Assembly: GCA_965112735.1 (NCBI GenBank)
Contig: OZ218961.1
Coordinates: 2,170,001-2,234,000, forward strand
Source of the DNA: Phaeosaccion multiseriatum
Taxonomy: Eukaryota; Protista; Ochrophyta, other classes
Direction of reading: 5' to 3'
Length of the DNA stretch: 64,000 bases
The notes under the pieces are model-generated. The model did not search any database. It saw nothing but the letters and a program-made list of their open reading frames with translations, and was not told where the DNA came from. How positions within the stretch are numbered: position 1 is the first letter of the stretch; each line of letters begins with the position of its first letter. The position numbers and the translations under genes are program-made. Of the stretch, positions 6,470 through 27,702 are shown one piece after another.

Positions 6470-9352
6470 GTGTTCGCGCCGGTAATGGAGAGGCAGCAAC
6501 TCGTCACGGAGAACAATGCCATGTTGCGACGGCGTCAACCCCAACGGCAGGAACGGGGGAAAGCGCCCATTCCGAAGCAAGCCCCACGTCTCAGCAGCAC
6601 GCACATCCCGAGGGCCGAAATGGAGGAGAGAACAGCACTAAGGCTCATTGAGATTGCGGAGATGGAGCAGCCGCTTCCGGAGGAGCCGCTCCTCCCCGTG
6701 GTGGTGTGTCATGGTGCGGGGGGGATGGGCAAGTCCGAGCTAGCGCGGGCCGTGATTCAGAGGGACGACGTCCGGAAGCAGTTCAAGAAGAACGGCATTC
6801 TGTATCTGCGTGTGGGGAGGCTGCATCAAGAGGCGGATGAAGAGGGGAAAGCTGACATGCTCCTGTCGCTGATGGACACGCTCTGGAGCGACTTTGATGC
6901 GAAAGTGGTGCTTGGGCCGCGACAAGATACTCAGCACTTCCGGGAAGCTTCCGACTTTGCTTCTGCGATCGCCACACACGTTCATAAGCACTCCTCGAGA
7001 TGCTTGTGCATTGCAGACGACGTGTGGGATGCCGACGTTCTGAGCATGCTCCGCAGGACGGGGCTTCAGCTGCTGGTCACGACGAGAGTCAAGGGGCTGG
7101 TCCCTTCAGAGCAAGGCGGGGGGGTGTTGGAGTCTGACTGCGTGGAGGTGGGGCGCATGGAGGAGAAAGCGTCGGTGCAGCTGCTGTTGAGGGACACAGC
7201 TGGCACTCGCGTTCCTAGTGTTGGTGAGGGGTTGTTTAGGGCCATCTTGCTTGTTGCAGAGTGGTGCGGGAGGCACGCACTGGCGCTGTCAATGGCCGGG
7301 TCGCTCCCTCAAGTAAAGAGCAAGCCGGATGAGGAGCAAGCCTGGCGCGGTTTGGCTGATGACATCAAGAAAGGGCTCGGCGAGAACAGGGAGGATAGAT
7401 CGATTGACAATATGAAGGCCGCGCTGGGCAGGGTTCTCACACTCAGCATCGACGCACTGCCTGACCCACTCAAAAGCCGTTATCTGTATCTGACGGTCCT
7501 TCCAAGGGGCAGGGGAGCGAGCGAGCTCATGCTGAGGTCGTTGTGGGCCTATGACGAGCCTGCAGTAGCAGAAGCAGTGGCTCAACTAGCGGATCGGTCT
7601 CTGCTGGAGAGGTGGGGCCATGGCGGTGCGGTGCCTCACGAGCTGCAGCTGGACTTCATGGCCAATACCATCAAGTTAGACAGGCACAAGTCGGACTTGA
7701 AGACGGCTGTAGAGCGCCAGTCTGGCTTCTTGTCCCAGCGGGACTGCATCATTGGGAACGTGTGGGCCGACAGTGATTCTGAACAGGATAGCACGGCTGG
7801 CGGCACAGAGTACGGCCTTGGTGGTGGATATGCGTATGTCGGGTACTGGCGCAGCACGTGGGAGCTCGCTCAGTCGTCGTCGGACATGGTGGTGGACGCG
7901 GTGATGAAGTCACTCGCGGAGGAAGAGTCTCACACAACGGGGGTGAGTAGAGCATGCCATTTGGAGTCATGTGCTGAGTTATTTGACATGGTAGTGAGAG
8001 GCGTGGAAGCGGAGGCGCTCTACCGCAAGGCCATGGCGATTAATGAGGAGGTGCTGCCTGCCAACCACCCGCACCTGGCCGGGTCGTACAATAGCCTCGG
8101 TAACCGTCTCCGCGATCAGGGCAAGGCGGAGGAGGCGGAGGTGCTGTACCGCAAGGCCATGGCGATTCGTGAGAAGGTGCTGCCTGCCAACCACCCAGAC
8201 CTGGCCATGTCGTACAACAACCTCGCTAACCTTCTCCGCGATCAGGGCAAGGCGGAGGAGGCGGAGGCGCTCTACCGCAAGACCATGGCGGTTCTTGAGG
8301 AGGTGCTGCCTGCCAACCACCCGGGCCTGGCCGTGTCGTACAACAACCTCGGCTTATTTCTCAGAAAGCAGGGCAAGGCGGAGGAGGCGGAGGCGCTCTA
8401 CCGCAAGGTCATGGCGATTGATGAGGAGGTGCTGCCTGCCAACCACCCGGACCTGGCCTCCTCGTACTACAACCTCGGCGTAGTTCTTACGGAGCAGGGC
8501 AAGGTGGAGGAGGCGGAGGCGCTCTACCGCAAGGCCATGACGATTCGTGAGGAGGTGCTGCCCGCCAACCACCCGAACCTGGCTATGTCGTACAACAACC
8601 TCGGTACCCTTCTCAGCGATCAGGGTGAGGCGGAGGAGGCGGAGGCGCTCTACCGCAAGGCCATGGCGATTCGTGAGGAGGTGCTGCCTGCCAACCACCC
8701 GGACCTGGTCATGTCGTACGACAACCTCGGTAACGCTCTCATTGATCAGGGCGAGGCGGAGGAGGCGGAGGCGCTCTACCGCAAGGCCATGGCGATTCGT
8801 GAGGAGGTGCTGCCTGCCAACCACCCGCACCTGGTCATGTCGTACGACAACCTCGGTAACACTCTCATCGATCAGGGTCAGGCGGAGGAGGCGGAGGCGC
8901 TCTACCGCAAGGCCATGGCGATTCGTGAGGAGGTGCTGCCTGCCAACCACCCGGACCTGGTCATGTCGTATGACAACCTCGGTAGCGCTCTCATCGATCA
9001 GGGCAAGGCGGAAGAGGCGGTGACGTCTTACCGCAAGGCCATGGAGATTCATCAGGAGGTGCTGCCTGCCAACCACCCGCACCTGGCCTTGACGTACAGC
9101 AACCTCGGATCCCTTCTCCACGATCAGGGCAAGGCGGAGGAGGCGGAGGGGCTCTACCGGAAGGCCGTGGCGATTAATGAGGAGGCGCTGCCTGCCAACC
9201 ACCCGGACCTGGCCTTGTCGTACAGCGCCCTCGGATCCCTTCTCAGCGATCAGGGCAAGGCGGAGGAGGCGGAGGCGCTCTACCGCAAGGCGATGGCGAT
9301 TCGTGACGGGGCGGTGTCTGCCAACCATCCGCACCGGACCAGCGCGTATTAA
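6470..9352 (+). CDS. NB-ARC-TPR NLR-like protein, paralog of 10..2775, lacking the N-terminal helical domain; 10 TPR units (first in-frame ATG at 6485)
   Basis: Same NB-ARC motifs and high identity to copy 1 from VFA onward; intact ORF; preceded by a pyrimidine tract ending in CAG at 6467-6469. Confidence 0.9.
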   Translation: MFAPVMERQQLVTENNAMLRRRQPQRQERGKAPIPKQAPRLSSTHIPRAEMEERTALRLIEIAEMEQPLPEEPLLPVVVCHGAGGMGKSELARAVIQRDDVRKQFKKNGILYLRVGRLHQEADEEGKADMLLSLMDTLWSDFDAKVVLGPRQDTQHFREASDFASAIATHVHKHSSRCLCIADDVWDADVLSMLRRTGLQLLVTTRVKGLVPSEQGGGVLESDCVEVGRMEEKASVQLLLRDTAGTRVPSVGEGLFRAILLVAEWCGRHALALSMAGSLPQVKSKPDEEQAWRGLADDIKKGLGENREDRSIDNMKAALGRVLTLSIDALPDPLKSRYLYLTVLPRGRGASELMLRSLWAYDEPAVAEAVAQLADRSLLERWGHGGAVPHELQLDFMANTIKLDRHKSDLKTAVERQSGFLSQRDCIIGNVWADSDSEQDSTAGGTEYGLGGGYAYVGYWRSTWELAQSSSDMVVDAVMKSLAEEESHTTGVSRACHLESCAELFDMVVRGVEAEALYRKAMAINEEVLPANHPHLAGSYNSLGNRLRDQGKAEEAEVLYRKAMAIREKVLPANHPDLAMSYNNLANLLRDQGKAEEAEALYRKTMAVLEEVLPANHPGLAVSYNNLGLFLRKQGKAEEAEALYRKVMAIDEEVLPANHPDLASSYYNLGVVLTEQGKVEEAEALYRKAMTIREEVLPANHPNLAMSYNNLGTLLSDQGEAEEAEALYRKAMAIREEVLPANHPDLVMSYDNLGNALIDQGEAEEAEALYRKAMAIREEVLPANHPHLVMSYDNLGNTLIDQGQAEEAEALYRKAMAIREEVLPANHPDLVMSYDNLGSALIDQGKAEEAVTSYRKAMEIHQEVLPANHPHLALTYSNLGSLLHDQGKAEEAEGLYRKAVAINEEALPANHPDLALSYSALGSLLSDQGKAEEAEALYRKAMAIRDGAVSANHPHRTSAY
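8009..9349 (+). repeat. 126-bp coding tandem repeat (TPR array, 10 units + cap)
   Basis: Same consensus as the first array with different variable residues; units 6-8 share LVMSYDNLGxxLIDQG. Confidence 0.95.
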
Positions 9353-9584
9353 GCGGAACCATCTTGAGGCTCATCTTAAGTGCAGGTGGGGTGAGGGGGG
9401 AGGGGAGGGTGCGTGACGTCATGTGTTGGTACTTGTCGGGTCGAGTAAACTGAAGCAAAGTGAAAGTGGGATGACAGAGCGGTCACACACACGCTCTCCG
9501 CTCCTGCTCTCTTTGACTCCCTCCCTCCCTCCCTCCCTCCCTTCCATCATCGTTGACTACAACTTATACACCGCCGACTCACAG

Positions 9585-9800
9585 GGCATCGTCGCGCAAG
9601 TGAGTCGCACCGGAGTGGTAACCGCTGTGGCTCTACTTGAACCTCTCACAGTTGGCGGGGTGGTGGTGAGTAAGGCCACCCTCCACAACAGCAGCCAGGT
9701 GCAGCGGTTGGGTCTACGTGAGGGCGACAGGGTCGTCGTCAGGCGGACGGGTGACGTCGTTTCTTTTGTGGTGAGGGTTGTGTCGACTCAGGGGGAGCGC
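9585..9800 (+). pseudogene. ligA: Duplicated ligA OB-fold exon fragment
   Basis: [66 protein letters not shown]; in frame here, but the ligase sequence ends immediately afterwards. Confidence 0.85.
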
Positions 9801-9914
9801 GAGGGGAGGAGACAGGCAGGACGAGCAGGGGTCTATGTCGACGTATCGATGTTGATGATCTCGACAGAGGAGAGCAAGGGGCCGAGGCCCATACCACAGC
9901 AGTTGGTGATACAG

Positions 9915-10050
9915 GAGAAGGAGTGCGCCATCTGCTGGGGAGGCATCTCGGGTGCACTGGTGGTGGTGCTGCCCTGCATGCATGCACAGCCCGTACCACG
10001 AGAGCTGTGCCCACACGACCATGGCCAAGGTCAAGTGCCTTACTACCAGA
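9915..10050 (+). pseudogene. Degenerate RING-H2 finger fragment
   Basis: ECAICW..VVLPCMH, then after a frameshift YHESC..KC; the final Cys pair is degraded. Confidence 0.55.
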
Positions 10051-11581
10051 GGGGTGATGAACGACTCTCTCTCTGTTCGCGTGTTTGTGTAGACTCCGCC
10101 GTGTTGCTCTCTCGCTCGAGTGGCGGCGCCTCGCTGGGCCTGCAGTGTATTCTTACAAATGTTCCATAATGCTTTGTATTATTGCTAATGTTAATATCCA
10201 TAATGCTTTTGTATTTAAAATAAAATAATACCCATAATGTTTTTGACGAGCAGAGACCCTTCCGCTGCCACCGCACCACCGCACTATACCTAGCACTACC
10301 TACGTAATCTTACGCTGCTTGGCCGAGGAACCCATCACCGAGGGTGCCGGAGGGGAGAGGGCAGCGCTCAGTGGCTCTGTATCACGGTGCCCCCCCCCAG
10401 TGCCGTCTGTGCCTTGCCTCCCTTCCTTCCTTCCTTCCTTCCTTCCTTCCTTCCGCTTGTCTGCACTGGTGCTGGCACGTACAGCCCCATCACCGCAATG
10501 CCTCACTGCCTTGGCTATACACGGGCATACGGGTATATACGGGTATATACGGGGTATGCCTACTGTACCAGGTGCCTACCGCACGTCCCTACCCTCCCTT
10601 CAGAACAGCATGACCCATTGGCACTGTTACGCAAGGGAGGGAGGGAGGGGGGGCAACAGCGAAGAGAGCGCTTAGTCGAACAGTCGAAGAGCCCACCGCC
10701 CGCATGGCTTCATCTGGATGGACGGTTGCGTTGGCACTTGTGCAGGAAGTTGGGTCCTCTTGGGGAGGGGAGAGGCCCAATTCCCCCCCCCCCCCCCACC
10801 CACCCCCGCACAAACACGCAACTTGTTCTGCCGCCCTGCTTGTTTTCGGCAGCTCCCTCTGTAGTGGAACGTCACGTCGCCCCGCACGGCAGAGCTGCAG
10901 AGCAAGCAAGGTGTCATTTCTTCCGTCGTCGTCAAGGGGCGTATGCACCATACCACCAACTCATGTACCATCAACTGGCGCATCCCTCCTCTCTCAGATA
11001 TCCTTGCTCTGGCAGCTTGTGCATGGCCTCATCTCTCCTCTCCAGTCCCGTGAAGCATCCATGCCACTGCCCGCCTTCGCAGTGAGCAGCGCACACAACG
11101 ACTACCTCGGCCCATCCACCCCTGGAGCCGAACCCTCCCCCGCTACCCCCCGGGATACAACAGGCCCCCCTGGAGCAACGGCCCCTCCGTAGCTCGTCCG
11201 TCGAGTTTGGTCAGTGAAGCTACCGAGCCAAGCAGGCCTCAAGTCAGGCCACAGAGTCAGGCGGGCAGACAGGCAGGTGTCAGGCACGCACAAAGAGCCT
11301 TACCGTTGAAAAGAGCCAAGACGGCAGGATGCTCACCAGTCAATCAATCCATCCTCGCTGTACGTCTCCTGCTCTACAGCATAGCGCAAAGTGACGGCGA
11401 TGGTAAGGCTGTTGGTGCTTCGGATATCGCCGAAGAGAGCAGCCGCACAGGGCTGGGCCTGTGGCCGAGCGTGACAACGATGCGGGCGAGAGGCAGCGAA
11501 CAAACAAACGGGCCGCCGCGGGGCTCTGGAGAGGGTCGACGGAAAGTACTCCGTCTTGGACGAGCAAAGACGGCCCCATGG

Positions 11582-11970
11582 TCAGCTCAAGGTCAGGTAC
11601 TTCGCGCCATCACCACCACCACCGCCGCCGCCGCCGCCGCCTTCGCCTTCTCCCTCTCCCCCTCCTCCTCCGCCTCTTCCCGTTGCGAGAGAGCAGAGCT
11701 CGCTCATGGTCCGGTCGTCATAGGCTCTTCCGTCCGTCACGTTGGTCACCCAGTGCTCCAGCGGCTGCTTAAAGAGGGTGTAGTCATCGCGGAAGAATCT
11801 CCACACGGGGCAGATCACAGATGGGTCTGTGTAATACTTTAGCACAGCGGCGTCTGCATCCGTTTTGTGGTGCTCTGGCTCTTGCTCCAAGAGAGCGCTG
11901 GGGTTGAGCTTCGTCTCCTCCTCCTCCTCCTCCTTCTTCTTCTCGTTGCGTGCTGCCACTAGTCGCGGCG

Positions 11971-12001
<31 letters not shown>

Positions 12002-13097
12002 GTGTATCACCAATTGCTTTGGGTGCGAGTGCGGCGAGTCCGGGAAGGTTTTCACAAAGAGAGGCACGTCCCTGGCCCTCACACCAATGGCCATAAAGAG
12101 CGCGTTAATCTTGTCCGCAGAGGTGGCCGGGTCGAGCAGCTCCACTGTATCATAGAGGTGTATGGTGCGGGTCAAGTTGCCGCAAAAGTGTCCGGCCCGG
12201 GCCCAGTGTGGGTTGTCTCTATGTCCCCATTGAGAGTCCCACGTGGTCATGGACAAGGCTGCCTCTGGAAAGGAGGGCCTCTCTTTGCCGAAAGCGGCTC
12301 TGCACATGCCCATGCCATCATCATCATGCCCATCTTCGCACTTGGAGCGGAAGGCGGAGAGGAAGCGCACGAGGGGCGGGCGATAGAAGACAGCCTTGTG
12401 CCAAGTAGGGTCGCGGAGGATGCGCTCCAGGTCGGGGAGGGTGAGGTGGTGGATCTTGTTGGTGTTCCTGAACCACAACTTGTCCACTTGCACCTGGCGG
12501 GGGTCGTAGCGACTACGGAGAGAGCGAAAGAGGTTGTTGAAGAAGGTGCAGCCCACTCTGTTTGGGGTTGGCGGGGGTGGGGAGGGTGGGGTTTGGGCGG
12601 AGGGGAGGAGAAGGAGCCAGGGGAGGTCGGGTGGCGAGGGGGGCGCGGAGAAGCGAGAGCGAGAGGGGCAGCAGAGGCGTGAGGGAAGGGGTGAAGGGGT
12701 GGGCGAGGGCGGATGCCACTGGTGGGTCGATTCGACAAAAAAATTTCCTTCCCCCCCCCCCCAAAAGCTGCCTACTATTACCTACTTACTTGTCGATGTA
12801 GCAGAATAGCAACCTCCGCTCAGGAACGACGATGAGGCGATTCAGGAACTTGCTATTGTCCAGCAGCACAGGGCCTTCACGCTCCCGGCGCCCCCCGCCT
12901 CCTTTGTGCCTCTGCTGGTGGCGATGCTTCCTCCTATGCCCGTGCTTGTGGCTCTGCCATTCTACTTCTTCCAGCCTCCGGTCATAGCTCGGCTGGTTGG
13001 CGCCCCCCTGCGGCCAGTAGCCCGCACTCAACACCACCACCAGCACCAAGCAGCCTACGAGCCAAGCCACAAGAGTTACTCGATTGGCCGGCGCCAT
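11582..13097 (-). CDS. Carbohydrate sulfotransferase (Sulfotransfer_2 family), type II membrane protein; exons 13097-12790 and 12557-11582
   Basis: N-terminal TM helix; the spliced 5'-PSB motif LLFCYIDK|VGCT is rebuilt across a GT-AG intron at 12789-12558; 3'-PB motif RPPLVRFLSAFRSK. Confidence 0.85.
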
Positions 13098-13222: not shown

Positions 13223-13386
13223 GGGGGGCCATTTAGGTAAGGGTTTTGAGTGTGGTTTCGTGTCGAGAGCAGCATGTGGTCGCGACATTAGCTAAGGCTT
13301 ATTCGTGTCGAGAGCACGAGGGGTGGTCTCAAGTCGGAGCCACGACTGAGCGCAGGGGACAGGCTGGCGTACACGCGGATTCGAGC
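13223..13386 (+). repeat. Left terminal inverted repeat
   Basis: GGGGGGCCATTTAGGTAAGGGTTTTGAGTGTGGTTTCGTGTCGAGAGCAGCATGTGGTCGCGACAT...GGATTCGAGC; contains TTCGTGTCGAGAGCA twice. Confidence 0.92.
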
Positions 13387-13585
13387 ATCCACCATCCCCC
13401 CCCCACCCACATAGTACTCCTTGAGAGCTCACTCGGTGTCCAGAACGATGACAGACTCGGGGCTACGGCGGTCAGAGAGAAGCGGAACGCAAGCAAGTTT
13501 AGGACGGTATGTTCGCAACGCCGGTCCCCCCACTCAAAGGAAGGAACCTTCTCCAACGTCTGTCGCACCCCGTAATCCAAACAGC

Positions 13586-15219
13586 ATGGGAAAGGGAAAG
13601 GGAAAGGGAAAGGGAGGGAAAGGAGAACTCGCTGCGAGAGGAGGAGGAGGAGGAGGAGGAAGGAACGGAGGGGCTCCGTCACCGCCGGTAGACACAACAG
13701 CGAGGACAGGAGCGGGAAGGACACCGGCATCCGCAAGTCCGACACCAGGAGGAGCGGGAGGATTGGGAGGACCTCTGTCTGATTTCACAGATTTCACAGC
13801 ATCTCCAGGAGGCGAACCGGGGGCGGCGGCCGCTCCGTCATCATTACCACCACCCGCGGTAGCACCAGCGACAACAGAGGTTGAGGGAGTAGCGGGAGCA
13901 GCGATTTTTGGAGGAGAAGGGGGCGCCGCAGCAGCATCAAGGATTCCTTCTCCACCAACTACAATTGGAACAGAGGGCCTTGCGGAGGGGGCTTTGGAAA
14001 GGGGTAGCGGAGAGAGTCAAGCCGAACTTAGCAAAGCCCAGGAACATGCTGCTGCCACTGCTGCTGCCACTGCTGCCTCTGCTACTGCCTCCGGATCCGT
14101 GCTCCGAGAGGCAGGGAAGTCCACGTCAGCACTCCCTAGTGGCGCGAGAGGAGGAAAAACTAAGAGGTGAGAAGGGCCTGCCTTGTCTCGTCTTTAAAGC
14201 TTCATTCTGTCCGCCTGCTGTAACGATTTCAACACGTCTCTTCCAACACCCCTGCGCAGAACGACGCAGAAGAAAATCCTTGGGCTCCTGAAAGCCAATG
14301 CAGTGTCATCACAGGAGAGGGAGGCGTTAAAGAAGCAGTACAGAGGCAAAATGAACGCCGCTGCGGCCATGTTGGCGGCCTGCGGCGAGAAAATTGTTAT
14401 CGTTGCGGCGGAAGACAGTGAGGTCCGAAAGATTGTGACTAACAATTTCCCGAATGGCAGCGTCCTGGCTACGGCTCTGCGAGACTCCCGTGTGAATTCC
14501 ATCATCCGCGAAGCTGTGAACGATATTCTTCCGAGGCAAGTGCAAACGTCTACAGCTGTTCAAGCGTCCGAACCCAGGACCCCTGAAAAGATTGTGGAGG
14601 AGGACGTGTCAGTGAAAGAGCTGCGCAAGGTCTGTGCGGTCTTGATGAAGCGCCATGCAGGAGATGTTCTGCAGGGAAAAGTCGAACAGAAGAAGCAGGA
14701 AGCCGCGCAGAGGGGGGCAGGGGGACGGCAGGAGGCCGTGGCGGACCCTGGGACAGGGGGGCGGTCAGGGATGGTCTTCACCAGCTCAACGCGAAAGGCA
14801 TCGCCGACAGCGGCCACAGGTACTGCATCGGAGCGACGCCGCAACCGAAGTATTGGCAAGGTGTGACCTACAACGGCAAAGCTATGGACTGGAAGGGATT
14901 TGGAGCCTTTCTCAAAGCAAAGCACTACGCGTGTTTGAGAATTCCCGAGAGCTTGGCGCACTCTGTGGTGGTTGCGTACACGAGGCACGTGTACGCAGCG
15001 GCGGCTGGAAGCAGCGGCGACAGCAACGGCTCAAACACCACCAGGGATCGCCAGAGGATCGGATCCGAAGCCGTCGAAGGCAGTCTGCATTCATTGATCA
15101 GAGAGGGCAACAAAGACGTCGCGGAGGCCCCACTCGACAAGGGCAGCAAGAAGCGAAAGCGGGGAGAGGCGGAGGCAACACCACCAGTATCAGTACCACC
15201 AGTAATGACTAATGTATGA
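13586..15219 (+). CDS. Transposon-borne protein of unknown function (G/A/P-rich N-terminus, helical middle, KKRKR NLS-like C-terminus)
   Basis: The GT-AG intron 14167-14259 joins ORF 13421..14170 in frame to ORF 14303..; a single frameshift near the G-run at ~14757 links to ORF 14863..15219. Start codon uncertain. Confidence 0.55.
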
Positions 15220-15226
15220 TTTAGAT

Positions 15227-18200
15227 TTAAGTCTCTCCTGCCTCCTTCCTCCGCTCCGCCTCCTTCAGCAGCATCCGCGCGATCTCATTGCGCTTCTCCC
15301 CCATGTCTTCCTCCCGCACCTCCTCCTTGAGGGACTTGCCCTCATAGATGCACCTTGCAAAGGACACAGTAAAGACTCCGCAGTCGTATCCATTCTTCTG
15401 CCAGGGGGTCGTGTCGCTGCAAGTCGGCAGGGACTGCCATCCAACCATGTCCATGGGCGCTGCAGACAGGAGGAAGAAGGGGGGGGGGGGTGGTTAATGA
15501 GAGACAGAAGACACAGCGGTGAGCTTGCCCAGACACTTACTCTTGAGCTTATCCACGTGCTCGTCCTGCAGCCAAAGCATGATAGCGTTGCGTGCGAGGT
15601 CGCCTTTGCCCCACTTGCTGTCGTAGCACTGCACTACCTTCTTCTCCATGTCAATGATCACCAAATACCAGTGATGCATGTGAATGTTGACCGGCACAAT
15701 GACCTTGCCACACTCGAAAACGTTTCCCCCCACCACCTTTTCGCCTTGTGTCCACCTCTTCACGTTCGCGTAGACGTACTGGTCCATGCTGAGGAACTTG
15801 TCGGTGAGCTTGTGGAGGAAGTGGGAGTTGAAGAAGTGGGTCGGGCGGCGTTCGCTGTCCAGCTCACACTTCGTCTTGTCGTCCTCTGCCATAAGGTCGA
15901 GGCAGAGATTGATCACCTCGTCGTTCAGCCACGTGAAGGACAGCAGGTACCGTAGCGTGTTCCGCGTAATCTCGGCGTTGAAGAGCGTAAAGAGAATTTC
16001 GTCCCCCTGCCCACCGTGGAAGGCCCATTGTAGGGCGGCCTCGTCACCCTCTGGCGGCAGCCCCGCCGTGTTTGCCTCTGTAGGTCGCCCCCTCTTTCGC
16101 TTGCGACTCTGCCCCTCCCCCGCCCCTGCTGTGACTCCTGCTCCCCCTCCCCGCCTCCTTCTGATGCTCCTGCTCCTTGCCCTCTCCCTTCTGATCTCTG
16201 TGCCTCTTCCTCTCCTTCTTGTACTGCCCCCCTGGGGTCTGTATCCTCGGATTTCTCTTCCTCTACCCCTTCGTCCTCCTGCACGACGCTGCCCACCGAA
16301 TCGCCCCGCGGCGACGGTTGAGGCGCCTCACGATGGAGGCCTTGGCGGAGGCCCACAAGAAGAGGGCTGGAACTGGCCTCGCCAACCTGCTCCTGGACAG
16401 GGGTGCGGCGTGAGAGGAGTAAAAAGGATGGAGGGAGGAGAGGTGGGATGGTTTTCGAGTGAGACACCCAGACGAGGTCAGCCGAAGCCTCCAAAGCCAA
16501 CCAGAAACGAACATTCTCTTCCTCCGGGCTGATGGTCTCCATGTCGGGCATGGTGACCTGTAAAGGAGAGACACACACACACACACACACACAAACATAC
16601 ACACACACATGTATCACTTTGACAAGCAAGCCTGGAAGGGGGCCAGGGTAAAGCACCTACCGCTTCGATTGCTCCTCGTGAGCCTTCCGCGGCCATGTCC
16701 TTCAGTCTCTTCTCCGCGACCATGTGTAAGAAAACGTTAACGTACATCTGAGCTGTGCGCGACGACATGTGCGCCAACTGGGAGTCCACAGGCAAGGCAG
16801 GCAGGCACAAAAAGCAAGGAAGTGAGGAGAAAAACTTGAGTGAGCTGTAGCCCGAGACTCTCCTTCACCTGCGTGGCGATTTTGCGAACCTCCTTGTTGT
16901 TCTGCTCCGCCGCTTGGGTGTCAAGGCTTCGCAAGACGCTGAGGAAGAGACGACAATCACGACGGGGAAGGCGGCTGAGTTCTTACACTGTGGGGAAACT
17001 GAATTGCCCAGGGGAATGTACCCAATTCAAGGGTATGGGCAGGGGGCAGGAGAGAGAGGGGGGGGGGGGAGTTTACCTGTACTCTTCGAACAAGAGAGGC
17101 ACATTCTTCTCGTACGCTGACCGTTTCATCAAACTCAAGATGCCGTAAAGGGTGTTGCAGGCCACATGGTTGGGCAAATGAAAGCGGTCCAGGCAAAACC
17201 TGATGCGAAAAAGTAGGCGCGGGTCCCGGTACAAGATGTACTTGTGCAGCTTACACACTGGGCCAGGAGGACGAGGAGAGGAGCAACGGAGAGCAACGGA
17301 GAGCAACGCAGAGCAACGGAGAGCAGAAGTTAGGCATTTCCTTGGCAACTGCTGCATCAACCCAGCACACTCTGTTCACCGCGGAGGCAGCAGAGGGGGG
17401 TACGGACGCTGCCTGCCGCACTTCCAACCCTTTTCAGTGACACTGAAGGAAATTCCAATCCCTTCGGAGGCGAAGCGGTACAGGGTTGAGGCATCGCAGA
17501 GCACTGTAGAGGCACCAACAAAGCATGAACAGGGCGTCATACACACTCTGTATCACTTCAGAAGCACCAGGAATGAGTACGGGCATTCCCCCCCCCCCCC
17601 CCCGCCCCCCCACAACCAAAAAAAGTCAGGCCGACTAAGTCACTGAATCAGCCCCCCTACGTGACCATGGTGGACCCTTGCCACAAACCCAGCGCGCATC
17701 GCTTGCCTCTGGTGAGGCGCACAAGGAAACATGGGCCTGACCAATCTATGTACCCTGCACCAGTGACTTCACAGGTGGTCTTGGCCCTCCCCCTCTGCGT
17801 CTCAGCTTGGGGAAGATCACCACCCCTGTTACGTGTCAGCCAAGCCGGAGGTATTTTCCCGAATCTCTTTGTCAGGAGCTCAGATAAAGGATCCTCTACA
17901 ATCCTACCAACCCTCAAACATGCAGCAGTCCATTCACCTCCTCTGCTTGGGCCAAACCGGCACCCAGTTTGCTCGTGCCGCCAAAGTAAGTCACTGAATC
18001 ACCCCCCCTGGGTCACCATGGTGGACGCTTGGCCGAAATCTAGCGCGGATCGTTTGAGTTTGGTCAGGGCTACAAGGAAACCTAATCAGACATTGGGGTA
18101 GAAACCCACAAGGTTGACTTCACAGGTTAGCGTAGCAAATCCCTCTCATTTCTGCCCCAAAACAGGGAAAACGACCACCTGCACAGCGTTTAAGCCGGCA

Positions 18201-21200
18201 TGACCAACTTGCCCCACTATTTTTGGTCTGAAGCTGCCCCTACGCATCCTCTACCCCTCTGCAGATTACTAAGCGGTGCCGCAGTCACTGATCCCCTTCC
18301 CTCCACCCAAACACTTTCGATTCTGCTCATGTCTGACCCTGTCAGGCACCGAATCACGCCCGAGGGGGGTCACACGACAGGCACAAGTGACCAGGACTTT
18401 CTCGCAGGCCCAGCTTGACCCCTCCACACTTTTCCGACTCTTCTGGAGATGTCAGAAAGGTGTGAAGAGTATACTAGCAGTGCTGCGGAACCGTCCTTAC
18501 TTGTCCCCGCGGCCTTTGAGGAGTCGAGAGGGAGTACAGGGGGCATCGGCAGCATCGCCGGACCCTCAGTACTCCTCACCGAACCCTCTAAAGACCTCGG
18601 GACGTCATAAACACTGTACCAGCAGCACTACCAGACTCTGCACACTCCTCCCCGACCCTCGAGAGGGCCTTCACCGCTTCAAAGGCTCCACACTCATTCC
18701 CCACAAACAACCCTCAGACGCGTTAAGCTCACCGTTGTCGTAGATCCATAGCACTCTCGCGTGCTTGGAACTTGAAGCACTCCAGCGTCGAATCAGCTCA
18801 AAAGGGTACGCCACCGACTCTGGCCTCGGCATGAACAGCTGGGCGAGCGGGAACCGATGAGAACAGAAGCATAAGAACAAGCCCGACGACATGTTGGCAC
18901 AGCTGCTGCTGTTCTTGCAGCACAAGCCGTCGTCCTTGTCCACTCCGGTCTTGTTTGAGGAAGGCCCGCGGTTCTCCTCATCCTGTGCGTAGGGTCGCCT
19001 CTCCGGTCTCTGCGGTACAAGAGACGAGAAAAAGGCCCAACAACACACAAAGGCGAGAGGACAAGTAGGCGAGTTCAGGGTTGAGCCAGAAGGGCGGGGG
19101 GGAATGGTTCGAAGGCAGGAGTACGGAGCGCATGGTTTTGGACATGAGAGAAAGGAGGTGGGTGGGTGGGGGGGGGGTAGCGGGGGGTAGCGGGAGGGGA
19201 AAGGGGGGCGGAAAGCTCAGCAAGGTCACAAAGCGGGGAAGCCATGATCCCATGCGGTGCTGTCCACTTACACTTTCGAAGGTCTGCGAGCAGCAGAATC
19301 CTTGTGCCCAGTCATCGTCCTTCGACACGACCTTCGTCTCCAAGGGGCGGTGCAGTCCCTTGTCCGCCTCGTCCATCTCCTTACACACGACTATGAAGCG
19401 GTTTCGCACCTCATTCCTACGCTGAACATTCCCCAGAAGGAAAGTGGGTGTCTTGTGCGCAAAACACTCCTCGTGCACGAAGTGGAGCCTTCCCTCTTCA
19501 ATGGCCTTCTCGTGGCGCTCCCTCAGGAGCCTATACTCCATCACTGCCATGGCAAAAAGAGGGTAGTGCCTCCAGAGGCGAGTCAAGAGCTCCGGGGGGC
19601 ACTCCTCCATGTCCTTCTCCAGCCAATCTGCAAGCCAAAGGTGTGTCCCGAAAATGTACCTGCCGGTGGGTGCACCGAGGCCCAGAGGAGGGACAGTTGC
19701 AGCTCAGTACAGACAAAAAAACTGCACAGGCCGGAGCGACTTGTCCAGGCCTTCTCTGTCTCAAGGACGCACCTCTCTACCTCCTTCGAGTCCAGCACGT
19801 GCACATCGTCCTCGTGCCCCGCGTCTGGTGAGACTCCTTCGTCCTCGTCAAAAGGCCCCGTCAAAGCTGTTGAAAGTACGTCCTCCTCAACGCCTTCGAC
19901 TCCTCCACTGAGCCCCGGGAGAACGTCCGACGCTCCATCCGCCGCAAAGTTCCTGCACAAGTATCTCCAGAGGGGAGGGAACACTTCCGCAGTCGGGACT
20001 CCAACGGCGGGACTTTGAATGGGAAGGGATTGAGGGGGGCAGGGGGGATATCCAGGGGGGGGGGGGGCAGAGCGTTTGGACGATTGGAAGTGTAGGGTGC
20101 GGTGCAGAGTGAAAGAAGAGTTCATGATGGTGGCCTTGCCTCACCTCACGGACTCGGCCTTGTAGCCCGCGAAAGCGTCAAACCACATGAAACAGTCCTT
20201 CACCCATTCCGGTACTTCACCGCCATTTTGCAGCTCGGTAAGCTCCTCTCTTGTCAGCTGGGGACGATGCTTCCCCTCCTTGCCGCCACTCGTTTTCACT
20301 CGTGCATACCTCAGCAGGGCACTGCGTGTAGGCTGCTGACGAGAACCAAGCTCCGTGATATCCCCGAAGTGTAAGCGCTTCAGCGGGGGAGGTCCTTTCT
20401 GACTGAGTTGGTCGGTTCAGCCAGATTCATCAACTTTCGTTGAAGGCCTGAATCAGTGAGTGCACATGTCGCAAGCATACAGAGGCATGGGTGTGGGACG
20501 AGGGACGACGGACGTGATGCATACACGAAGTGACGTAGCGAAATCAAGGGGAGAAGGGGAAAGAAAGGGGGGGGGAGAAGAGGGCGGGGGGGCATATACG
20601 GAGGGAGGATCGGATCGAGGGAGGCAAGGGGTAAGGCCCCTATGGGGAGGAAGGAATACATAGGAGAGCAGCTGATACCGCGAGAGAGTAGGAGGCAGTA
20701 GGAGGGGGCAGAGAAGAAGCAGGGGCGGTGTGTAGGCAGCGAGGGAGGACGCGAACGAGGTAGGCAGGAGGGTAGGGGGGTAGGGGCGGGGGCGGTGGAC
20801 AGAGAGTGAAGAGGAGGGGGTACGCAGGGGGACGGGTGGGTGGGGGGGGGGGAGCGGTGGGCAGGGAGGGAAGGGGGGAAGAAGGGAGAACAGAGGCAGG
20901 CCAGGCGCGGGTGGGGGGGCGGGGGGAGGGAGGAAGGGAGAGAGGGATGGGAGGGATGGGAGGGATGGGAGGGATGGGAGGGAGGTAGGGAGGCTGCTCA
21001 ACACTTACCCTCCATGAGACCGTCGACAACGAATGCCCACGGGTCCAGACCGCAAATAGGGCAACACGGCCAGGGGTCCAGGACGCCCTCCATATTGAGG
21101 AGGAAGGCCATGAGGCCCTGCCTGCCCCGCGCTCTCAGAGTCTCCGCAGGGATCGTGAGCACATCTGTCAAGCCAAGTCTAGATGCTCCGTCCACGCAGC

Positions 21201-22709
21201 ATCCTGTCCAGTTGGCTGCTGTAGTACCGTTGCGTCGGATTTGGTCGAGAAAGTCGAAGCCAGCTTTGTAAGCCAAGACTGTGGTATACGTGCTCCGAAA
21301 GAGGGCATGGCTGGAGGTATCCGCCAGGGCGATGTGGCCGCACCTGGGGCATTGATAGTCCACGAGCACGAGGTAGTGCGGGAAGACCGCTTCCTGTGTC
21401 CAAAGACAAGGTTGACTGTGGATGGCAGTCATGCTCGAGCCACAGCTGGCGCATGTCGAAAGTGCTTCAATCCGCTGTGGGTAGGGCTTGCCGTAAAAGT
21501 AGGCCTGCATCAGCTCCACTATCTCCGAGTTGCCCCCCTGTCGCCCTAACCATGCCACTTGACGTTGGTGCAGCGATATTGCGCCCCCATTTGTTATAGT
21601 CTCCACCATCTCTTGAATATTGCGCGTCGGCCTGTGGTGCGGCGTGTCCGAGTACTCGGGCGCCGCCGCTCTGGGTTCGTCCGAGTGTAACTCCTCCCAA
21701 GCGATGCCATACATGTCGTCGCCCCCCCCCCCCCCAAAGTCTCCTGCCCCATCGTACACGTCTTCACTCCCTACGTCTTGAAAGAAGCCGTCCTCCCCTT
21801 CCCCCCTGTCCCCACAGCCCCCGCCCCCTCCGGAGGTGGGAAGAAGGGCGTCCCGTGACACGAGATGCGCAGCAATCTCGCACTCCCCTTGCTGGCACTC
21901 CATGCCCAGCAGACTCAGACAAGTGCCACAGGCGGGACACAAATTGCGACTGCAGAGCTCGCCACAAAGCGACTGGAAAAGTAAACGACAGCGAGCGACA
22001 GGGGATTCAGGGGGGGGGTGTGGAGGTCAAGTGAGACCAAATCGAAGCGAAAGCGAGCTGTGTCAGACTTTTCGTCAATAGCTCCACTCCCTACCCATCG
22101 TACCTTATGACCCACGCACTCCAAGCCTTCACGCACTGGTTCAGGAAGCTGTGCGCATCGCTCACTCCAGGAGGAAGATACGTCCCACAAGAGGGTGCTC
22201 TCGGGGAGGGGTGAAGAGAGCAGTGAGGAGGCGAGGAACTTGGCGCAACAACTCTCGGCACTGTCGATTCTTACAGCAGGGGCGGTCTCCTGGATGGACA
22301 ATGAGTGCCGGCGACGGAAGGCAGTCTTGTGTGCACCGAGTCCGTGCAGCTCTCCACAGTGCAGATGGCATAACCGGTGCAAACATTCAGAGCTGCTTGG
22401 CAGCACGGAACCATTCCACCCCTCAATGCAGTTACCAGGATGAGGACACATACTGTTGAAGACCTTGCGTTGGCCCTCAAGTGTGATACCAGACAGGGAC
22501 AGCTTCGCTTTCCGCAATGTTTCTAACAATGCCTGAAAGATCAGCCATTCCTCATCAATCGCTCGTTCGGCAAACGTGTACTCGAGGCCTACGGTACTCT
22601 CAACTGCAGCACACTCATCGTACCGTCGCTGGAGTCTATCGCCCGAAGCGCTGAGGTCGTCGAAGAGCCCGAGCATATCTCCAGTACTCTCTGCACTCGC
22701 AACAGGCAT
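15227..22709 (-). CDS. Multi-exon KDZ/Zisupton-like transposase (Cys clusters, RNase H-fold core) fused to a C-terminal Ulp1/C48 SUMO protease; several homopolymer frameshifts
   Basis: CxC clusters (CASCG..YQCPRCG; CPICGLDPWAFVVDG). Core: CCKN..SSGLFLCFCSH..PESVAYPFELI, WIYDN|VCKLHKY (intron 18732-17258), LDRFHLPNHVAC, DTQAAEQNN. Ulp1: WLNDEVIN, FFNSHF, VPVNIHMHHW, CYDS, QKNGYDCGVF. Confidence 0.8.
17636..18200. repeat. Diverged ~351-bp direct repeat inside the long transposase intron
   Basis: TAAGTCACTGAATCA..CCATGGTGGAC at 17636 and 17987; TGACTTCACAGGT at 17764 and 18115. Confidence 0.75.
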
Positions 22710-22892
22710 GGTGACGTGTGTAACTGTCTCTCACCTTGTTTCCCACCCTGAAAGGGCGCTGAAGTCTTAACGTTTGAGGACGTAAGAGCAGCCCAGTAGA
22801 GAGTGGGAAAGACAAGCAGAGGAGGGAAAAGGTCGTGTCATTACCACGCAGTGCGAAGAGGAGATCCCGAGAAGATCCAGTGTGCCCGTGCG

Positions 22893-23061
22893 GCTCGAAT
22901 CCGCGTGTACGCCAGCCTGTCCCCTGCGCTCAGTCGTGGCTCCGACTCGAGACCACCCCTCGTGCTCTCGACACGAATAAGCCTTAGGTCATGTCGCGAC
23001 CACATGCTGCTCTCGACACGAAACCACACTCAAAACACCCTACCTAAATCGGGGGGCCCCC
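22893..23061 (-). repeat. Right terminal inverted repeat
   Basis: GCTCGAATCC...ATGTCGCGACCACATGCTGCTCTCGACACGAAACCACACTCAAAACACCCTACCTAAATCGGGGGGCCCCC, the reverse complement of the left TIR with few mismatches. Confidence 0.92.
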
Positions 23062-26668: not shown

Positions 26669-27702
26669 CTAACCCCCGTCTTCGTATTCATTCTCGTCCA
26701 CATAGTCTTCCTCACTCTCATCAGATGAGTCGACGTCGTGTTGAAAAGTCACCTCGAGCCCCTCGGGTACATCTGCAGGCAGCGGGTAGTCCTCGCTCAC
26801 CTTCAGCTTCCTCAGACCGGCAGGCAGGCTCTCCAAGGGGCACGTGTACCGCTGTCCTAGCTCCAGGGCGCGGAGGGAAGCAGGGAGGTCGAGGGGAAGG
26901 TTGAATGAGCTGAGAGCCCCAAACTTGACCACCTCTATGCCGTTGGGCAGGAGGAGTGGATGATTGAAGGCGCACTGGTCGCGGAAGGTGACCTTCTTCA
27001 CCGAGGCGGGCAGAGTGACGTGTGTGGCGAACATTTTGCCGAACTTCACCTCCTCCAGCGAGGTCGGCAACACCACGCTCTGATTGAAACACACTCCGAA
27101 GGTAATCTTCTTGAGCGAGGAGGGCAACACAATGGGCTTGTCGAAGGTAGAGAACACGCCAAAGTCAAGCTCTTCCAGCGAGCTCGGGAGAGTCACGTCG
27201 CCCCTATTGAAGCTCCAGCCAAGGGTGATCTTCTTGAGCGACTCAGGGAAGACGATGGGATGGTTGAAGACTGAGAACTCTCCGAAGTCCACCTCCTCCA
27301 GCGACGCAGGCAATAGCACTGCAGGCTGGTCGAACTTTGAGTTCATGTGAAAGGTGAGCTTCTTCAGCGAGGGTGGTAGCACGAGGTGGTTGTTGAAGCG
27401 CCGGCCGAATGTCACTTCCTCCACTGTATTGGGCAGCACCACGCCAGGCTGGTCGAAAGAGTAGGAGAAGAGCACACGCTTGACTGTTGCCGGTAGAAGC
27501 GCCAGAGCCTTCGTAACTAGGGCTTTGTCTGCAGCAGTCAGCGTGGCGTCTTCCCGCCTGAGACCCAGGTACACAGTAGTGACGCGAAGCGAGCGTCTCT
27601 TGTCACTCGATCGAGGCTCTTTGCGCAACCTCTTCTTCGCCTCTTGCTCCCGAATCCTCCCTGACCTTCGCAACCCCCCCCCCTGGATGACGCGCCTGCT
27701 GT

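Follow-up and report, generated by a model that had tools for sequence, protein, structure and literature searches.

The Element and Its Copies

The 64,000-nucleotide stretch analyzed here (hereafter the window) comprises positions 2,170,001 to 2,234,000 of the forward strand of contig OZ218961.1 in assembly GCA_965112735.1 of the stramenopile alga Phaeosaccion multiseriatum; coordinates given without a contig number count from its first letter. Window positions 13230–23050 are occupied by a 9,821-bp class II (cut-and-paste) DNA transposon that is bounded by terminal inverted repeats (TIRs) and has been active very recently. Inside it, two genes converge, each starting near a TIR: a large minus-strand gene whose predicted product joins a transposase-like protein to a SUMO protease domain of the Ulp1 type, and a smaller plus-strand gene, referred to as gene 2. 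We favor, with some reservation, a reading in which the window holds one of six near-identical autonomous copies of a two-gene element that would encode a divergent transposase resembling that of Kyakuja, from the Kyakuja–Dileera–Zisupton (KDZ) transposons, with a captured Ulp1 domain, and that spread in a recent burst. The borders and their repeats are as follows.

13223–13229, no strand: left target-site duplication, GGGGGGC, repeated after the right end (six-copy alignment)
13230–13386, plus strand: left TIR, beginning CATTTAGG, with 15-mers at 13257–13271 and 13302–13316 (repeat search, alignment)
22893–23050, minus strand: right TIR, with 15-mers at 22963–22977 and 23008–23022 (repeat search, alignment)
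23051–23057, no strand: right target-site duplication, GGGGGGC (six-copy alignment)

An inverted-repeat search of the window returned arms of about 98% identity at 13243–13386 and 22893–23036, and alignment of the six fetched copies set the ends of the element, giving TIRs of 157/158 nt with five mismatches and one indel between the arms. The 5' start at 13230 is the same in all copies, and the last letters, at 23050, read CCTAAATC. Each TIR contains the 15-mer TTCGTGTCGAGAGCA exactly twice, 45 bp apart, with 0 occurrences expected by chance. Sequence identity is near-total within the element and drops to noise beyond its borders, so that the TIRs sit at sharp, copy-invariant edges, as in class II TIR transposons. 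Duplications of 7 bp lie beside four of the six copies, three of them perfect and one with a 6/7 match, and their sequence differs from copy to copy (GGGGGGC in the window, GCTGGCC, TTCTTCT, and GTACGAC/GTACGAG). A preliminary description of this DNA, made from its letters, had proposed a large two-gene TIR transposon with an internally repeated 15-mer, and both points hold; the same description had placed the element at 13223–23061 with TIRs of about 165 bp, and here the repeats are real and the ends were misplaced, the 7-bp duplication having been counted as part of the TIR.

The genome searched amounts to 67 Mb in 22 contigs, and copy counts are lower bounds. Fourteen matches to the left end were found, and the TIRs, far from being unique to the window, mark six full copies and two fragments. 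The full copies, of about 9.82 kb each, are spread over five contigs (two on contig 12, one of which is that of the window, and one each on contigs 1, 2, 3, and 13), with flanks unrelated to each other. Across 9.8 kb only 24 sites carry substitutions among the six copies; pairwise substitution divergence is 0.03–0.10% and most variants are private to a single copy, a pattern pointing to a single source that multiplied in a recent burst. The number of indel events is similar to that of substitutions, and nearly all indels fall in G/C runs of at least five. A 615-bp right-end fragment on contig 2 (5376627–5377241) is 100% identical to the element, with AGATCG at either border; the same contig carries, near 4989183, a further remnant of 47 bp from a terminus. 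Both probably arose when copies lost internal sequence or excised imperfectly, as cut-and-paste elements are expected to do. The genome search, with counts that are lower bounds, revealed no family of short non-autonomous derivatives.

Two Convergent Genes

The copy on contig 13 (c13), whose frames are the longest, was used for the gene models, because homopolymer lengths vary between copies. In it, a ten-exon minus-strand model with nine introns, all GT-AG and with matching phases when the junctions are read base by base, yields one unbroken frame of 1,474 aa from ATG to stop. Because the splice sites were chosen partly to keep the frame, its openness is supportive rather than independent proof. 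In window coordinates, the predicted exons are the following.

21009–22709, minus strand: exon 1, 567 aa in c13, with a Cys/His-rich N-terminus, CxxC..CxxC, and CPICG ahead of VVDG (candidate first Asp); shifted in the window copy at 22009–10 (open reading frame [ORF] and model)
20145–20402, minus strand: exon 2, shifted in the window copy at homopolymer 20384 (model)
19773–19952, minus strand: exon 3, acidic and more doubtful than any other exon (model)
19272–19659, minus strand: exon 4, with C-terminal CCSQTFES (model)
18733–19009, minus strand: exon 5, with CFCSHRF..WIYDN (candidate second Asp) (model)
17077–17257, minus strand: exon 6, with the VCKLH..DRFHLPNHVAC block (model)
16869–16938, minus strand: exon 7, with AEQNN (candidate catalytic Glu) (model)
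16661–16777, minus strand: exon 8 (GT-AG junctions in phase)
15541–16557, minus strand: exon 9, an acidic/Gly-rich linker, a KRKRG motif resembling a nuclear localization signal (NLS), and the first two thirds of the Ulp1 domain with His and Asp; shifted in the window copy at 16142 (Pfam C48, 2.9e-16)
15227–15459, minus strand: exon 10, completing the Ulp1 domain (QKNGYDCG, with the catalytic Cys), then the stop codon (Pfam C48, 1.3e-8)

The candidate catalytic residues singled out earlier (VVDG, YDNVC, DRFH..H..C, and AEQ) are all present on the minus strand, with CPICG..VVDG at 21019–21063, WIYDN at 18734–18748, DRFHLPNHVAC at 17157–17189, and AEQ at 16896–16916. The splice YDN/GTGAGC ... 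CCCAG/TG TGT (slashes marking the junctions) yields YDNVC in the right phase, and the AEQ exon joins the long Ulp1-bearing frame via two further small exons. The 1,474-aa frame thus supports, in silico, the proposed fusion of a transposase-like protein to Ulp1.

Relative to the open copy, the copy in the window is one base short at 22009–10 (exon 1), 20384 (exon 2), 16142 (exon 9), and 14755 (gene 2), and position 19594 (exon 4), in frame in the window copy, is shifted in two others. Frameshifts at homopolymers had been placed at 22015, 20385, 19597, and 16230; the first two correspond to the breaks at 22009–10 and 20384, the last lies instead at 16142, and the window copy has no shift at 19597. 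Copies c2 and c3 are shifted at some of the same runs. Copy c1 has two exon-1 indels, the exon-4 shift at 19594, and a Cys-to-Tyr change in CPICG, and c12a is interrupted in exon 1 by a true nonsense substitution.

Two repeats were seen in the introns of this gene. The 1.47-kb intron 5 contains 95-nt direct repeats (17636–17730 and 17987–18081, 80% identical) that are present solely in the six element copies, and intron 8 a (GT)n/(CA)n microsatellite (16560–16600) whose length differs among copies. The first ~300 aa of the large protein have a relative elsewhere on contig 12 (2985230–2986140), decayed and frameshifted, with an MCPHPxxC..C..HC motif and 30–50% identity; it adjoins a gene resembling those for ubiquitin-conjugating enzymes and may be the remnant of an old related element.

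Gene 2 starts 60 bp inward from the left TIR, contains one GT-AG intron (14167–14259), and would encode about 558 aa.

13448–14166, plus strand: gene 2 exon 1, from the ATG, with a Gly/Ala-rich, low-complexity N-terminal half (ORF, GT donor)
14260–15219, plus strand: gene 2 exon 2, one 340-aa frame, open to 15219 in c13 and c3; shifted in the window copy at the G-run at 14755 (ORF)

Its product matches no Pfam family. A paralog on contig 3 (1604270–1605571, minus strand) is an intron-less ORF of 434 aa, 29% identical (E 9e-32), with a long poly-Glu insert, no Pfam family, and no transposase-like sequence nearby; it looks like a cellular gene.

The Ulp1 Module and Its Origin

Both Ulp1 exon pieces match Pfam Peptidase_C48 at 60.4 and 35.4 bits (E 2.9e-16 and 1.3e-8; gathering cut-off 20.7), and the best relatives of the module among solved structures are human SENP2/SENP1 (E 1.6e-18). 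The catalytic His, Asp, and Cys, reported previously as a complete triad, are indeed in place, together with the oxyanion Gln (HWYL, CYDS, QKNGYDCG), and these residues are also conserved relative to a paralog on contig 5.

Apart from the transposon, a genome scan with PF02902 gave strong Ulp1-type matches at two places, one on contig 14 and one on contig 5, and a few short ones. The transposon module is just 25% identical to the contig-14 gene; to the contig-5 gene it is 59% identical over 174 aa (E 2e-68), with 49% identity in the next exon. This second similarity begins upstream of the Ulp1 domain, at a common ..GEGQ..RKRKRG.P motif, and the intron that splits the domain occupies exactly the same position in both, with near-identical edges (..GTGGAyAAGCTCAAGA/GTAAGT ... 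TGCAG/sGCCCATGGACA). The contig-5 gene, which resembles SENP/Ulp1 genes (~1949200–1951000, minus strand), is single-copy and has an unrelated N-terminal part of 300 aa. Since it does, the simplest reading is that the transposon probably took up genomic DNA spanning the 3' half of a SENP-like host gene; in the reverse direction, the contig-5 gene may be a domesticated Ulp1 module of transposon origin. As the closest relative of the module is a gene of the same genome with the same intron position, its presence in the element is no evidence of kinship with Zisupton.

Affiliation of the Transposase and Alternative Explanations

What kind of transposase does the large gene encode? Judged by its motifs, the core would be a very divergent KDZ-like enzyme of the Kyakuja type, an assignment that we hold to be probable though well short of secure. 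The motifs run in the order CPxC-D-CSxxF-C.HR-YDxxC-FHLPxH..C-..E, an order that would agree with the fungal KDZ consensus and that serves as a lead rather than a test; a literature search for printed KDZ motifs found none. The label "Zisupton-like" given in the preliminary description is wrong, because the duplication here is 7 bp, in all informative copies, and Zisupton makes 8 bp; Zisupton proper is accordingly rejected. Elements of the CACTA/Transib type, which make 2–5-bp duplications, are rejected as well.

A number of results weigh against the favored reading, foremost among them the searches of the core. Profile tests were run exon by exon on about 35 exon/ORF pieces at E ≤ 10, and no piece matched the profiles for KDZ (PF18758), CxC (CxC1–6), the SWIM finger (PF04434), MULE, DBD_Tnp_Mut, Transposase_mut, hAT, or other transposases; this test is blunt, because the core is split into exons of 23–129 aa, each of which, taken singly, would score under the HMMER filters. 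Peptidase_C48 was the sole Pfam match over all ORF pieces on both strands. The motifs CASCG, CPRCG, and CPICG stand just before the candidate first Asp of the protein in which the CxC profiles found nothing. PF18758 run on the whole genome also gave nothing, a result of little weight since the controls were silent too. The affiliation with KDZ was thus not confirmed, either on the exon pieces or in the genome. Blank results also came from word-index protein searches that used exon 1 (577 aa), the core piece (343 aa), and an exon-6 piece (100 aa) as queries, within a length window that excludes full-length relatives; phmmer found 0 matches to the 343-aa core piece among 1.84 billion representative proteins; a metagenome scan with exon 6 found no relative, and the core pieces matched no sequence of a solved structure. 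An AlphaFold2 model of exon 1, built without an alignment, had a mean pLDDT of 36 and was unusable. In addition, about 370 aa separate the candidate first Asp from the second, the right terminus reads ..AAATC rather than ..TG, long TIRs are present, and two of the six copies show no recognizable duplication (no clear one beside c1, which has lost the last three element bases, and none beside c2). Five of the six copies, that of the window included, have frame breaks or a nonsense codon as assembled. Finally, neither a transcript nor a protein of the large gene is on record, nor is the exon-1 ORF as an exact called protein, so that the splicing and the Ulp1 fusion stand in silico.

How else might these observations be explained? 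The element could be a real and recent transposon of an undescribed or other DDE superfamily, its KDZ-like motifs being generic to transposases of the RNase-H fold, which we consider rather unlikely. The order and spacing of the six motifs, with FHLPxH..C about 27 aa past YDxxC, would fit KDZ; the size of the element, its multi-exon gene, the accessory gene, and the 7-bp duplication fit KDZ also, and another stramenopile carries KDZ elements (PMC12477816). The blank profile and sequence searches of the core argue for such a different origin, as does the presence of long TIRs alongside a 7-bp duplication, a mix unreported for Kyakuja (no TIRs) or Zisupton (8 bp), and motifs of the C(2)H and H(3)H types are known from other superfamilies too (PMC12730594). 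A Mutator-like element (MULE) carrying Ulp1, like the plant KI-MULEs or the MuDR elements of hydra and lancelet, would share the long TIRs, the convergent genes starting from them, and the C-terminal Ulp1 (PMC2836005), and the C(2)H-like CKLH right after the candidate second Asp and the AEQxN motif would also suit it. The blank results with the Pfam profiles MULE, DBD_Tnp_Mut, Transposase_mut, and SWIM nevertheless speak against it, and the Ulp1 domain, being apparently of local origin, is uninformative on the superfamily. MULE duplications, moreover, are typically 9–10 bp long, against 7 bp here, and we regard this explanation as quite improbable.

The remaining alternatives concern mobility rather than affiliation. 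An origin of the copies by segmental duplication or misassembly was rejected: the very high identity between copies would suit it, but the sharp identical borders, the unrelated flanks on five contigs, the TIRs, and a separate target-site duplication for individual copies leave it next to no probability. The family could also be dead, with the homopolymer breaks real and the single open copy an assembly error or otherwise defective. The broken state of five copies as assembled, the nonsense substitution of c12a, and the Cys-to-Tyr change of c1 agree with this, and expression evidence was not found. Against it, a divergence of 0.03–0.10% leaves scant time to decay, indels about as frequent as substitutions and confined nearly to G/C runs are the usual pattern of long-read consensus error, and in one copy 4.4 kb of coding sequence over ten exons has stayed open, with gene 2 open too. 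We therefore judge extinction of the family rather unlikely. The suggestion that the element may be intact and active fares differently by copy: the window copy is broken as assembled, and c13, open throughout both genes, is consistent with an element that is possibly still active.

A Model for Transposition

Returning to the favored reading, a recent Kyakuja-like element with a captured protease, we propose the following model. The core would adopt an RNase-H fold with a D..D..E-type chain formed along CPxC-VVDG, CSQTF, CSHRF, YDNVC, FHLPNH..C, and AEQ. Expressed from promoters probably situated within the TIRs or immediately internal to them, the transposase would recognize the paired 15-mers of each TIR, form a paired-end complex, excise the element, and reinsert it with 7-bp staggered cuts. 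Its NLS-like motif and intact catalytic residues suggest that the Ulp1 domain acts in the nucleus, where it would probably deSUMOylate the transposase, or else chromatin or repair factors at the site of transposition. It is possible that such a deSUMOylase counters host silencing, as the preliminary description supposed. Going further, we speculate, as a tentative proposal, that the element founds a deep, unsampled KDZ-like branch or a new DDE superfamily undetected by current profiles and libraries; that it independently welded to itself a SENP-type deSUMOylase of its host, intron included, which would tune SUMO-dependent silencing or repair at insertion sites; and that one copy may still move.

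Surroundings of the Window Copy

The insertion in the window appears to be intergenic, with a sulfotransferase-like ORF (11582–12556, minus strand) on one side and ORFs without a family on the other. Further upstream lie a 960-aa ORF with NB-ARC and TPR domains (6470–9352, plus strand) and an ORF (9423–10169, plus strand) with the OB fold of NAD-dependent DNA ligases (1.8e-22), a domain unusual in eukaryotes, and a weak RING-like match (E ~1e-3) below the cut-off. An ORF with FNIP repeats (7e-39) is found at 26669–27673 on the minus strand.

Comparison with Known Systems

The element illustrates no new principle. Earlier work has described large KDZ elements that carry accessory genes, has recorded KDZ in algae and also in a stramenopile, and has reported active KDZ as well as transposase–Ulp1 fusions. 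KDZ transposons reportedly go back to Iyer et al. 2014, with Zisupton described by Bohne et al. 2012, and Mutator elements carrying Ulp1 are said to have been described by Hoen et al. 2006 and van Leeuwen et al. 2007. What appears to be new is a family core that escapes all profiles tried and has no relative in a library of 1.84 billion proteins, the joint occurrence of 7-bp duplications and long TIRs, the probable cellular donor of the Ulp1 module, with the same intron, still in the same genome, and one apparently intact copy. If one copy is active, insertional mutagenesis in a stramenopile alga could draw on a cut-and-paste transposon of its own genome. The probable Ulp1 donor, still recognizable, would make a clean case for asking why unrelated transposons (Mutator, Ginger1, and this element) repeatedly recruit SUMO/ubiquitin-like proteases, and a core that escapes all profiles tried would widen the range of sequences known for KDZ-like transposases, to the benefit of repeat annotation in algae.

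KDZ elements typically span 9–30 kb and have long TIRs, accessory genes, and multi-exon transposases of more than 1,300 aa (bioRxiv 10.1101/2024.08.15.608186, on Cryptococcus; PMC12477816, on Ectocarpus; PMC9297572, on Pristionchus Zisupton). The view that they are little characterized outside fish and fungi is outdated, since they have been reported in Ectocarpus (PMC12477816), Chlamydomonas (PMC8226300; bioRxiv 10.1101/2023.03.24.534157), and nematodes (PMC9297572). Kyakuja elements have 7-bp duplications, a 5' CA start, and CA..TG termini, with no TIRs reported (PMC12730594). With Kyakuja (Kyakuja-1_LB, PMC12730594; Kyakuja-3_cRei of Chlamydomonas) our element shares the 7-bp duplication, the 5' CA, and its large size. 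It has in common with them, too, an accessory gene, a long multi-exon transposase, and a Cys-rich region ahead of the catalytic core. The order of motifs around the candidate D, D, and E is presumably shared as well. Unlike fungal Kyakuja, reported without TIRs, it has 157-bp TIRs and ends in ..TC rather than ..TG at its 3' side; it further differs in lacking a Pfam KDZ or CxC match and a TET/JBP gene, in its C-terminal Ulp1, and in its host, a stramenopile alga.

Zisupton and the giant KDZ elements of other hosts (Cryptococcus KDZ1–3, bioRxiv 10.1101/2024.08.15.608186; Ectocarpus KDZ-1_Ec32, PMC12477816) are likewise TIR-bounded, at 6–30 kb, with extra ORFs and multi-exon transposases of 1,300–1,400 aa, and have been recently active in their hosts. 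Zisupton and Dileera differ in their 8-bp duplications (PMC12730594), and Zisupton and the giant KDZ also in the SWIM finger and PF18758, neither of which is matched here.

Ginger1 and Mutator transposases offer a parallel for the protease, with a Peptidase_C48 domain C-terminal of, or beside, a DNA transposase (PMC2836005), and MuDR shares the two convergent genes starting close to the TIRs. The transposase-linked Ulp1 domains of plants derive from host ULP genes (PMC2836005; Hoen et al. 2006; van Leeuwen et al. 2007), and a role in transposition or repair has been proposed for the Ulp1/OTU domains of Ginger1 and Mutator (PMC2836005). In contrast to these systems, the element described here matches no integrase or MULE profile, makes duplications of a different length, and likely retains an identifiable Ulp1 donor with a common intron in the same genome. 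From the SENP1/SENP2/Ulp1 SUMO proteases, with which it shares the conserved catalytic His, Asp, Gln, and Cys, the domain differs in that the in silico model joins it to about 1,200 aa encoded by the transposon, with its specificity for SUMO predicted.

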